Below are positions 3,284 through 13,076 of a DNA stretch of 64,000 bases, in pieces. The stretch covers positions 6,138,001 through 6,202,000 of the forward strand of contig OU015569.1 in assembly GCA_907165135.1 (NCBI GenBank). The letters run 5' to 3'. Position 1 is the first letter of the stretch. Each line of letters opens with the position of its first letter. Under the pieces are notes generated by a model that worked only from the letters and a program-made list of their open reading frames with translations, made no database searches and was not told where the DNA came from. The stretch is from Oikopleura dioica (lineage: Eukaryota; Animalia; Chordata). The translations under genes were made by a program, and so were the position numbers.

Positions 3284-3905
3284 ATGAAGTTGTCAGCTTT
3301 TGTTTTTGGATGTGCCTCTGCTAAGGACCGGACTATTGCTTATTTGTTTTACTTTTTCAGTTAGAAACACTGCAAAAATATCCAATCTAAAGGTTATGTT
3401 CCACACGAGGAATCCTGGAGATTGCCATGATACCTGTGTTCTCAACCGAGTCTGTCAATTCTGGACTTTTGACAACCGCATGGACCCAGAGACTGAGCAA
3501 AGACGGCACGAGTGCCACCACCAAAACCACAATTCATACGAGAGTATCCACGATGCTGAGTATATGCAGTGTGGCTCTTTCTCCGAGCCACAGGGAGCCG
3601 TTCACAGGACTTGGCTCCAAAGATTTCTTCTTAGTTTAAAAAATTAGCTGAATCTAACGAAATCAGAACATGATTAGAAAAAATATGGAATAGCCAAAGA
3701 AAGCAATTGCCGGTTTGAATTCGGGGCGAACGACTTTGGTCGCAAGTTCATCCAGACTCACACTCCAAAACAGTGCATGCAGATCTATGAGCTTTGCCGT
3801 GAGTGCTCTGCTTATGAATGGCGTGAGTACGATACCGTCACCGGAGAAATCGATGGACACTCGGTCACTGAACACGTTCCTGGACACTGTGTACTCCGAA
3901 TCTAA
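3284..3905 (+). CDS. Small secreted protein with two PAN/apple-like domains
   Basis: ATG 3284 starts MKLSAFVFGCASA (signal-like). Domain 1 reads CHDTCVLNRVCQFWTFD...C. Domain 2 lies in an unlisted frame, GIAKESNCRFEFG...QCMQIYELCRECSAYEW...GHCVLRI* (TAA 3903-3905). Joining requires short introns with GC or GA donors. Confidence 0.65.
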
Positions 3906-9587: not shown

Positions 9588-11310
9588 TTATTCATCGATA
9601 AAGTTGGTGCAGATTTGAGCGAAGTCGGATGCATACTTCATGTGCAGATTGTGTTTTCCTCCTGGAAAAGCTTTGTACTGCACTGGGACATTATTAGATT
9701 TCAAGCCATTTACTATTTCATCGGCCATCTCTTGCGTAATCCAGAAGTCTTTCTCGCCATGAATAACGAGAGAAGGAGAGTCCACGTTTTGGAGCTCCGT
9801 TCGACAAACATCTCCGTTTCGCTCGTCTTCATTCAAATTATGAAAAAACATGTTTTTATTCATACCAATATAAGTGAGAAAACAATCAATCCAGTTTGCC
9901 CACATATCCTTGAATTCAGCAGCTCCGTAAACGGTTTCGTATGGCTCCCTTGCTCGTGCCCCCCAGTTGTCAGTATTACGCATTTTTAAATAAGTTTCTC
10001 GGTCTTTAGGTTTGATGAAAAGGTGCAAAAGAAAGTTTAATTATTTCGGTACAAGAATACTTATCTTTTGAAGTCTATTTCATCAGTTTCCTGACTCTGG
10101 AAGTGTTGCATTACTTCCGAAAACTATCATTTTCTCAACCACCGATGACAGGCTTTTATTCCCTGCAACGCAGATTGCCGTTATGCCTCCGTCAGACCAA
10201 CCGATGAGATTCGCCCGGTCAATTCCAAGCTCTTTCAAACAAAAAGCGAAGTCTTCCGCGTCTCGCTGAAGAAGATTTGCGGCTGGCCATGTTCGCAATG
10301 GCGGTCGCGCACGGCCATGACCAGCTGGCTCGAAGGGATGGTTGGACATTTCCCTTGCACAAGCTTTGAGCCAGGATACCACACCGCGCTACTAGCCTAG
10401 ATATGGGGGCGCAACGGCGCCCGCGCGCTTATATGAAAAGCATCAGCGAGGAGATGGGAAAGGAAAGCTTATCCCTTTTAGATTCAGAACCAGAAGAATT
10501 TACAATTGTTTTTATAGATAAAAAGACTTAATGATATTGATTTTATTTTTAAATCATTAAATAACTAAGAACATGTATTCAGCTGCCTGCTCCGGGGGTT
10601 TAGTGGGAAGGAAACTCACTAATTGACCAGTTCATACTTCTATTTACGCGCCTTCTTTTACTCTGACTGGTTTGGTCAGAAATTTATCAAATTCTAGTAC
10701 TCCTTACCTCGGGGCTCCGCCCCTTCGGGCCTAAGATGCCGGGGTCTAGTCTAGGGTTACTTAGGGTTACCTTCGGTAACCCTAACTAACCCTAGCCTAT
10801 CCCCCTCGGGTAAGTTTGTTCTGTCATTTTGCCCAGTGCCCCCTAACCCTAACCTTTATTTTAGCAAATACTAGAATTTTATAATTTTTATCAAGAAAAT
10901 GATATTTCATCGTGGATAAGCTTTCTCTTCCATCTCCTTGCTGACGCTTTTCATATCAGCGCGCGGGCTCCGTTGCGCCCCCATATCTAGGCTAGTAGCG
11001 CGGTGTGGTATCCTGGCTCAAAGCTTGTGCAAGGGAAATGTCCAATCTCCCGCTCGAAGCACAGTAACCTGTATTTATGAAATGGCGACTCTTTCTCCCA
11101 CTGGATCTTTAATTTTCGTTGTAAGAATAGACGGCTAAATGTGAAAACCTTGAAATCAGTATCAAGACAACCGCATGCACCGGGCATGAAAACCACTGCT
11201 TTGTCCGCAGCAATGTTCTCGTTGTCTTCAAGAACACAGACTCGGCCATCTGTAAGAGTGATCCGCCTTGTCAATCCGCGAAAGCCTATTGTGCTAACTC
11301 GCTTTAGCAT
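9588..11310 (-). CDS. BPHL: Valacyclovir hydrolase / biphenyl hydrolase-like alpha-beta serine hydrolase, interrupted by a TIR element
   Basis: Contains VFMPGACGCLDTDF, (FE)PAGHGRARPP, GWSDGGITA (nucleophile elbow), LVIHGEKD and PGGKHNLHMKYA, all collinear with BPHL. One intron is GA-AG (10004-10090). Confidence 0.9.
10336..11051. mobile_element. Non-autonomous DNA transposon (MITE-like), about 138-bp TIRs, 8-bp TSD
   Basis: 10336-10474 is the near-perfect reverse complement of 10914-11051. GCTCGAAG is duplicated at 10328-10335 and 11052-11059. No transposase ORF is present inside. Confidence 0.92.
10751..10795. repeat. Hairpin built from telomere-like TAGGGTTA units
   Basis: CTAGGGTTACTTAGGGTTACC-TTC-GGTAACCCTAACTAACCCTAG forms a 21-bp stem with one mismatch and a 3-nt loop. 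Confidence 0.85.
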
Positions 11311-11552
11311 GACGGAATTTTCTCCTTAAAATGCAACTGAAGGCGAACGGTGAATTTCATGGAATCAATATATTATACAGCATTTTTAATTTTGCAAGTG
11401 GAACAATAATTTGAAGTCACATGTATTTTGGCTCACACGTAGACGTTTTCTTGTGGCGGGTTTCTGCGAAGGCTTGTTTGCGCATTGCAAATGATCGGGA
11501 CGGAAATGTTCAAGTGGCCACCTAAAGAAAATATTAGGGATAGACCACTAAG

Positions 11553-13076
11553 TTAAAAATCACTTTGGGAAGGCAAGTGGAGGACTCTGTCAGCTGGGAG
11601 GTAGTGATCTATTAGCTCTTCGATAGATTGGAATTCTCGCTCTTGCGTCCTCACCAGTCCGCGTCCAGATCCGTTATCGAGCTGCTGACAACTGTCGAGC
11701 ATGAGCACATGCTGGAAAATTGGCAGGCCATTGGCATTGTAATTCAGAACGGACAAGGTGATGTTCCTAACTCGATTGACCTCTTGGGAGAATTTTCAGG
11801 AAAGAGAAAACTCGACTGCTTACCGTCGATGAGTTCTGTACTAGCTTCCCGCAAAAGAAATGCGCCATCGTCGCCGTTGATTCTCAGCTCGCGTTCTGCT
11901 TGTTCTCGTGCACTTAATCCCGGCTGGAATTTGAAGAAATAGGGAAGACATCGGGCAGCATTCACGACCTCGAGGATATGACTTGATCTCTGTAATAAAA
12001 TTACATTAAGAAAGGGACAAAACTCGCTGTATAACTACCGAAGAAGGATTCGCTAAATTAGCACTGGGTGTGCATCTTTGAGGGAACTTCCCTTGCTGAG
12101 CTTGAAGAATCGCGTCCGAGTTCACGTAGTTTTGCACGGGTTCTATCGCCGGTATGTTCTTCGTCCTCAATGACTTTCTGTCTGGAGGCTTCGGAGGTTC
12201 CTCGGTGGCATTGCGGTAGGCGCTACCTCTCGAGGGACTTCCGTTTTCACTTTCTAAGGAGCGTCTTGGAATGTGCATCTGGGCAGTTGAGCCAGATGGA
12301 ATAGTGTCATCCCATTTTCTGCCACTCAGAGTCATTGACTGAACAATGAACGGGGCTGGCGGTGGACTTGGTTCGACGAAGAACTGTTCCATCACATGAT
12401 ACATCTGGTTTGCGACGTAGTGATCGCAGCATTCAAGAACGTAACACGCCCGATGAGTACCGTCCTCTTTCTTTGCTACGAATGAGACGAATATGTCCTG
12501 ATCTACAAAAAAATACTTTCAAAAAGCAATTCCATTAAAATCAAACCTAGAGAGGCGAAACTGATTAAGCTCATGTTAAATATGGCCATTTCCGTTGTCA
12601 CCGTCTGCAAGTTACCGCCATTGACCGACTGCCTCTCCTTTTTGGAAAGTTTGATGAAGTTAGGATCGACAGTGACTTCATAGAGCTGCTGACTTCTCTC
12701 TGGCACACTCTTCTTGCCGACGATTCTTTGTATTTCCTCCTCTCTGAGATTACCCCCGGAAGGGGAAAAGTCTCGATTTGAAGCAAGCGCGAGTGTGTAG
12801 ACTGCAAAAGCAACGATTTCTTCTCTCGTTGAGTTGTCAAAGTTGGTGAGGCTTCAAGCTTGACATTATTTCTCATGCCGCTTTTGAAGGAAAAATCTTT
12901 ACCTCTCAAGAATACCGACTGAGCCACAGTATCTCACCCGTTGGAATACTTTCGGATCCATCTTCTCTTCTAATTTTTTCCCGCGCTTCAGCTCGTGTAA
13001 CTTGTCTGTGAGCTCGACTCGAAAAATCCCATCTGAATTTAATAACTCGATAAAGCTCGCTTGAGGACCCGTCCAT
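11553..13076 (-). CDS. SHC: SHC-family adaptor (PTB - CH1 - SH2)
   Basis: PTB segments: VRYCGSVGILESLTNFDNSTREEIV, NMSLISFAS and FVSFVAKKEDGTHRACYVLEC. The CH1 region carries a YVN (Grb2-type) motif. The C-terminal SH2 reads GDDGAFLLREAS...ITLSV...EFQSIEELIDHY. The 5' start is uncertain. Confidence 0.85.

Follow-up and report, generated by a model that had tools for sequence, protein, structure and literature searches.

A Mutator-like transposon inside a coding exon of a BPHL-like hydrolase gene of Oikopleura dioica: disrupted allele or nascent intron

Among animals, discussion of intron gain driven by transposons and of relaxed splice-site rules centres on larvaceans, where most of the evidence comes from old, fixed introns. 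In maize, Wessler and colleagues reportedly found that exonic Ds, dSpm and Mu insertions are partly spliced out via cryptic sites in the element ends, an imprecise splicing in or near the terminal inverted repeats (TIRs) that is said to leave small in-frame changes and leaky alleles. Introners, whose hosts include Micromonas, Aureococcus and dinoflagellates, form families of hundreds to thousands of copies, nearly all of which are functioning introns with precise excision (PMC9860276). Transposon-insertion intron gains have also been credited to Oikopleura (PMC3443670, Table 1), and for Fritillaria borealis numerous short introns derived from miniature inverted-repeat transposable elements (MITEs), with AG-AC or AG-AT ends and splicing shown on RNA, are reported by Henriet et al. 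2019, in so far as that work is summarised in PMC11282704. Here we describe a 64,000-nt stretch of contig OU015569.1 from Okinawa-type Oikopleura dioica (hereafter the window, whose positions serve as coordinates throughout unless a scaffold or locus is named), in which a 716-bp transposable element (10336-11051) lies inside exon 2 of a gene resembling BPHL, the valacyclovir hydrolase. We read it as a young insertion that is probably disruptive.

The case joins known kinds: transposon intron gains in Oikopleura and, as far as the summary of that work extends, MITE-born introns in Fritillaria are already documented. With the latter, as they are described there, it shares a larvacean host, a non-autonomous DNA transposon with TIRs and a target-site duplication (TSD) in coding sequence, and tolerance of non-GT donors; it differs in being a single 716-bp insertion in a species whose spliceosome is known, within these sources, only for introns of the form G-N…AG. 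Like an introner, it is a DNA transposon in an exon of an otherwise intact gene whose TSD and ends could supply splice sites, but its family numbers about eight complete copies and exact excision is not available to it. The maize insertions are likewise exonic transposons, but in plant hosts and with canonical splice sites. Splicing is demonstrated by RNA in Fritillaria and, reportedly, by cDNA in maize; in O. dioica it is a possibility read from the DNA.

A repeat search of the window identified two inverted arms (10330-10465 and 10922-11057) of 136 nt that are 91% complementary. The left TIR (10336-10465, plus strand), which starts GGATGGTTGGACATTTCCC, agrees with the reverse complement of the right end at 130 of 140 positions when a gap is allowed; the right TIR (10922-11051, minus strand) starts GGGAGATTGGACATTTCCC in reverse complement, and the initial annotation's reading of the left end as GGGATGG… gives way to GGATGG… on the plus strand. 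A 38-nt piece of the TIR occurs exactly twice in the window against zero expected occurrences, and a perfect 8-bp direct repeat, GCTCGAAG, stands immediately outside both element ends, at 10328-10335 and 11052-11059. On the sense strand the former copy reads CTTCGAGC and codes for part of C-F-E-P. Removing the element together with one copy of this repeat yields, by local computation, a 172-codon open frame reading …KYRLLCFEPAGHGRARPP…. The initial proposal of an exonic insertion, which was based on such a deletion, is thereby borne out, the same sequence running without interruption in DNA, cDNA and protein records of related O. dioica.

These relatives came in part from a scan of metagenome contigs, which returned two records, both of the Bergen type. 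The first (Ga0209092_10097193; L056) is genomic, retains its introns and reads …TACAGACTTCTTTGCTTCGAGCCTGCAGGACAC…, that is LLCFEPAGH, with a single CTTCGAGC; the second (Ga0115102_10310830; L057) lacks every intron, is hence transcript-derived, and reads as L056 does across the site. The 276-aa product of the second record (P0273) falls into the same 90% cluster as CBY09766.1 ('unnamed protein product [Oikopleura dioica]'), a Bergen-type gene model with the uninterrupted exon …LLCFEPAGHG…. Logan and ENA contigs contribute 111-aa open reading frames (ORFs) of the P0274 type to the cluster as well; the one that was read, P0274, spans the uninterrupted exon. A more distant relative (P0152, 60% identical) has …LICFEPAGYG…. 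The empty allele that the initial annotation had suggested looking for in other assemblies is therefore present in relatives, and because it is, we regard it as established that the uninterrupted exon is ancestral, the insertion derived and the 8-bp repeat a true TSD. The Bergen-type relatives represent a cryptic lineage different from the Okinawa type and not the same population. The closest lineage seen outside the assembly is P0003, from a 946-bp ENA contig, the exonic part of whose ORF is about 96% identical to exon 3 of the window.

Given that the assembly is Nanopore-based and haplotype-merged (PMC8008620), a repeat might have been misplaced by long-read assembly or by haplotype merging. 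Such an artefact is extremely improbable here: the 8-bp sequence, present once in relatives, is duplicated exactly, and the TIRs are complete at both junctions, a combination that is the hallmark of genuine transposition.

The disrupted gene was delineated by comparing its exons one by one with human BPHL (PDB 2OCG) and by comparing cDNA with genomic sequence (L057 and L056), which gives a four-exon BPHL/valacyclovir-hydrolase-like gene on the minus strand. Exon 1 (11149-11310, ATG at 11310) comprises 54 codons that align collinearly with residues 1-54 of the O. dioica orthologue (276 aa), and is followed by a 42-nt GT-AG intron (11107-11148) whose homologue genomic L056 retains and cDNA-like L057 lacks. 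Exon 2 is split by the element into an upstream part (11052-11106; IQWEKESPFHKYRLLCFE plus one nucleotide), placed by collinearity with the orthologue, and a downstream part (10091-10327; …PAGHGRARPP…GWSDGG…NATLPES) matching 2OCG residues 57-132 (E = 1e-14) and orthologue residues 74-151. Intron 2 (10004-10090) has 87 nt and the non-canonical ends GA-AG (TCAG/GAAACT … CCTAAAG/AC, the slash marking the splice boundary), lies at the same position and is of the same type in L056, and is supported by the L057 junction. Exon 3 (9866-10003) and exon 4 (9588-9826), the latter carrying the motifs HGEKD and GKHNLH as well as the stop codon (9588-9590), follow from the 2OCG and orthologue alignments; between them the 39-nt GT-AG intron 3 (9827-9865) is defined by the L056/L057 comparison and shows up in the PDB alignment as a gap of 13 residues. 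Both intron 1 and intron 3 are in frame and stop-free, and a plain ORF reading overstates the exons by 14 and 13 residues, respectively.

The alignment of 2OCG to the downstream ORF begins exactly at FEPAGHG, equivalent to WDPRGYG from chain residue 57, and leaves the 16 repeat-encoded residues ahead of it unaligned; the last ORF matches residues 130-253 (E = 2e-14). The gene thus resembles BPHL in its alpha/beta hydrolase nature, its exon matches (E of about 1e-14 each) and its GWSDGG, HGEKD and KHNLH motifs, all the catalytic motifs being kept, and orthologues named valacyclovir hydrolase carry PF12697 and PF00561. It differs from CBY09766.1 in that the Okinawa allele is split by the transposon after the …LLCFE codons. 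In the Okinawa genome the gene is single-copy at both the DNA and the protein level; a search of its own assembly for a second copy or haplotig of the gene flank found none, so that no empty allele is present there.

Alternatively, the Okinawa gene might have been a decaying pseudogene, dead or no longer needed before the element fell into it incidentally. In keeping with this, public gene models for the locus were sought without success: the 99-aa downstream ORF, used in a word search, matched only a Bergen-type fragment, and a search with the 257-aa orthologue, which covered proteins of about 141-450 aa and hence neither shorter nor fused models, returned no Okinawa model spanning exons 2-4. 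The coding sequence itself argues to the contrary. All 272 whole codons align collinearly with the 276-codon orthologue, at 80% amino acid identity and with no gap, stop or frameshift, as the initial annotation had noted of the other exons; the catalytic motifs are retained, and pN is 0.11 against a saturated pS of 0.73, corresponding to dN/dS of about 0.05 relative to the Bergen type. Prior decay is accordingly very unlikely.

If the element is left in the transcript, translation proceeds into the TIR and reaches a TAG at 10989-10987 (minus strand) after 21 extra codons (CFE-REIGHFPCTSFEPGYHTALLA-stop), the early stop that the initial annotation had predicted. The product of unspliced RNA would have 93 residues and would lack the Ser-Asp-His triad.

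It is possible, albeit unlikely, that the element instead acts as a nascent intron, in which case the permissive O. dioica spliceosome would remove it from the pre-mRNA and the gene would stay functional. Such removal has some foundation in the organism and in the gene. O. dioica is documented to splice GA-AG introns (PMC7072748, PMC8008620), and intron 2 has GA-AG ends in both lineages (TCAG/GAAACT in the window, AAAG/GAATTG at L056:742-808), the junction being confirmed by cDNA in L057; both donors fit the conserved AG/GAA context of O. dioica GA donors (PMC7072748). The genome's tolerance of GA donors, assumed at the outset, is thus evident in the interrupted gene. The remainder of the gene is intact with a low dN/dS, in-frame pairings of splice sites exist, and precedents are provided by the Oikopleura gains (PMC3443670, Table 1), the introners (PMC9860276) and, as summarised, the Fritillaria MITE introns (PMC11282704). 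The low dN/dS, however, reflects the long time before the insertion.

To enumerate the possible introns, we listed every stop-free, frame-preserving pairing with G at its start and AG at its end. There are 40 of these, about the one-third of all pairings expected by chance, and because exact excision would require a CG…AG intron, none of the 40 G-N…AG pairings restores the original peptide; they alter it by +1, -1, +3, +12 residues and more. The sole canonical option, GT-AG 11068..10354 (CAG/GTTACT … TGCAAG/G), converts LLC to EMSNHP in the core beta-strand whose counterpart in BPHL is VVA. The routes that would disturb the protein least are GA-AG 11049..10329 (CGG/GAGATT … TTCGAG/C), which adds an Arg (FERPAGHG), and GG-AG 11051..10325 (GAGC/GGGAGA … GCCAG/CT), which removes an Ala, while GA-AG 11012..10325 (CAG/GATACC … GCCAG/C) adds 12 residues. 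The initial claim that several pairings restore the frame with small changes is therefore upheld as to the products, FERPAGHG, FEPGHG and YREMSNHPFEPAGHG all being reproduced, but loses its force as to their number, which is close to chance, and does not extend to restoration of the peptide. The donor CGG/GAG, moreover, lacks the conserved A at -2 and at +3 and so deviates both from the AG/GAA context (PMC7072748) and from the gene's own GA donor.

Folded as RNA, the TIRs form a predicted stem of about 140 bp (-421 kcal/mol, z = -23.7) in which all of the candidate sites listed are buried except the upstream GT donor and the CCAG/CT acceptor at 10325. Such a stem might help splicing by joining the ends of the intron or hinder it by hiding the sites. 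The fuller form of the proposal, in which a 716-bp GA-AG (or GG-AG) intron is being born with the aid of the TIR stem, the hydrolase works with one residue changed and the empty allele segregates, we consider doubtful.

The behaviour of the family also bears on this question. The genome (G000; 64,281,565 bp, 19 scaffolds) was searched for the family, including a 19-mer scan of the termini, and contains 19 terminus matches and about eight complete elements; besides the window element, seven copies or subfamily members bear 8-9-bp TSDs. The genome-wide search initially suggested thus does find other copies. None of them was shown to lie inside a recognisable coding exon, the open frames adjoining three copies (L038, L039, L047) being without Pfam or Atlas support, and so small a family with no other exonic member does not behave as introner families do. 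The nearest copy (G000:C3:1137469-1138086) shows 96.9% identity to the window element across 618 aligned columns, with five deletions. Less similar copies were located at C4:13806325, C2:11987521, C1:773986 and C4:5920725, and a subfamily at C4:12256630 and C4:5508906; the terminus scan yielded no member of the window element's own subfamily outside this list. The TSD has 8 bp in the window copy, at C4:13806325 (L037) and in the longer element described below (L058), and 9 bp at C2:11987521, at C1:773986 and in both subfamily copies (among L039, L043, L047 and L048). The first six bases differ consistently between the two ends, being GGAYGG at one and GGGAGA at the other. In the closest sister copy (L033:1528-2080; G000:C3:1137949-1138501), the TIR plus flank is tandemly duplicated over 415 bp, and 6 kb away (G000:C3:1143960-1144166) lies a fragment that matches residues 1-71 of the transposase discussed next at 97% identity.

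A 2.56-kb element with the same termini (L058:1054-3616), recovered by the terminus scan as a pair 2.55 kb apart on C1, starts GGATGGTTGGACATTTCCC, ends GGGAAATGTCCAATCTCCC, has an 8-bp TSD (GAAAAACA) and contains an intact 571-aa ORF at G000:C1:5820501-5822213. As it is only 76-85% identical to the window element overall, it is, on that comparison, a relative and not the direct parent. The ORF matches the Pfam MULE domain (PF10551) with E = 1.8e-5 and 25.5 bits, just under the curated cut-off of 27.6, and a PF10551 match is found in three of four transposase paralogues. In a protein-atlas search its first match scored 0.97, and the ten best named matches all share MULE; word search and PDB profile search returned no relatives of the transposase. 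The protein is present once in the genome, with intact paralogues at 48-50% and about 30% identity. Uninterrupted MULE-type ORFs of 541-572 aa occur at C1:5820501-5822213, C5:10116282-10117985, C3:264387-266066 and C2:8822147-8823673, and at least four diverged, intact lineages of MULE-type transposase suggest recently active Mutator-like elements in this compact genome. The L058 element is itself flanked by 48-nt inverted arms (L058:642-689 and 3689-3736) consisting of AATGGCACG repeats, which gives the appearance of an insertion into a further palindromic repeat.

Mutator-like elements (MULEs) have long TIRs of about 100 bp or more and TSDs of about 8-11 bp; hAT elements have short TIRs of about 10-25 bp and a strict 8-bp TSD. 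Because the TIRs are long, the TSD has 8-9 bp and the partner appears to be of MULE type, the element is classified, on these sequence features, as a non-autonomous Mutator-like element and not Merlin, hAT or P, the families among which the initial annotation had hesitated. With MULEs and their non-autonomous derivatives it shares TIRs of about 130 nt, the TSD length and a partner that has the same termini and a probable MULE domain, as well as the habit of short elements to keep the ends and lose the gene. The O. dioica family departs from described MULEs in the sub-cut-off Pfam score, the lack of word-search relatives of its transposase and the unequal first six bases, and the window element in having an extra hairpin module inside. 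Two candidate families were considered and set aside. Merlin would have fitted the 8-9-bp TSD and GG termini taken by themselves, but no match to its IS1595/Merlin-type transposase (PF12762) occurs in the genome; hAT is excluded by the 136-nt TIRs, TSDs of 8 or 9 bp and the MULE-type partner, the hAT domains themselves not having been searched for genome-wide.

The internal module of the element (10678-10891) has its own short inverted ends and a telomere-repeat-like hairpin, and is common to many other repeats and to the MULE paralogues. About 165-210 nt long, it recurs with 87-99% identity at more than 40 loci whose flanks are unrelated, including L058:3270-3440, L060, L062 and L005-L030, and it sits between the transposase start and the right TIR in MULE paralogues that are only 48-50% identical in protein. 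Its central hairpin has TTAGGG/CCCTAA-like arms and a loop that reads TTCG in the majority of copies and GAAG in L058. Neither Rfam nor tRNA searches with the element gave a credible match, and the module might be a nested MITE, a structured RNA, or a segment that binds the transposase or serves as a promoter.

The age of the insertion can be approximated from the TIRs. Where it can be polarised by the opposite TIR, the window copy has about two or three private substitutions in 280 nt, or about 1%. The sequenced Okinawa animal has a heterozygosity of 3.6% (PMC8008620). Since private change of about 1% lies below this value, and since the assembly is merged, we infer that the insertion is young and may be confined to one haplotype; a rare allele in the heterozygous state is plausible. 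The same estimate disposes of an argument that we had entertained, namely that intact exons imply function: at an element age of about 1%, roughly one disabling change or fewer would be expected even in a dead gene.

Upstream of the BPHL-like gene lies an SH2-domain gene (Pfam SH2, E = 7e-4 on window 11747-11965). The intron-less record L057 (positions 1-1400) runs from this gene directly into the BPHL-like gene, corresponding to window 9588-11965, a layout that suggests a polycistronic, operon-type transcript.

While the anatomy of the insertion, the family of the element, its derived state and the intactness of the rest of the gene are established, its effect is a matter of likelihood. In the mechanism that we favour, a non-autonomous Mutator-like element would have moved by cut-and-paste into exon 2 of a single-copy, BPHL-like serine hydrolase gene, in the Okinawan lineage of O. 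dioica after its split from the Bergen-type lineage, making the 8-bp TSD; a MULE transposase acting in trans, for example the intact 571-aa ORF of G000:C1:5820501-5822213, could have mobilised it. The insertion would be mainly disruptive in this allele, any splicing would use weak cryptic sites, and the original peptide would not be restorable. We consider it probable that this is a young, likely polymorphic and disruptive insertion producing a null or strongly hypomorphic allele. Several observations weigh against this, including: (i) the intact state of the other exons and their catalytic motifs, although about one disabling change is all that the age of the element leads one to expect; (ii) the existence of in-frame options with changes as small as +Arg or -Ala; (iii) the splicing of GA-AG, GC-AG and GG-AG introns by O. 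dioica, the BPHL-like gene having a GA-AG intron of its own; (iv) the Fritillaria MITE insertions spliced as non-canonical introns, as summarised in PMC11282704; and (v) the blank among Okinawa gene models, which may reflect only the holdings of the protein collection.

The insertion is dated and structurally unambiguous: its TSD and TIRs, a relative of autonomous type and the empty site of a sister lineage are all known. It lies in a gene that is single-copy and otherwise intact, in a species that can be cultured, where rescue of a transposon-hit exon by splicing can be tested against its loss. Should it prove a plain null allele, it would be an ordinary deleterious polymorphism and would still serve as a marker and as evidence of recent MULE activity in this genome. 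Should it prove to be an intron at birth, it would offer a tractable laboratory system for the origin of an intron from a DNA transposon in an animal.

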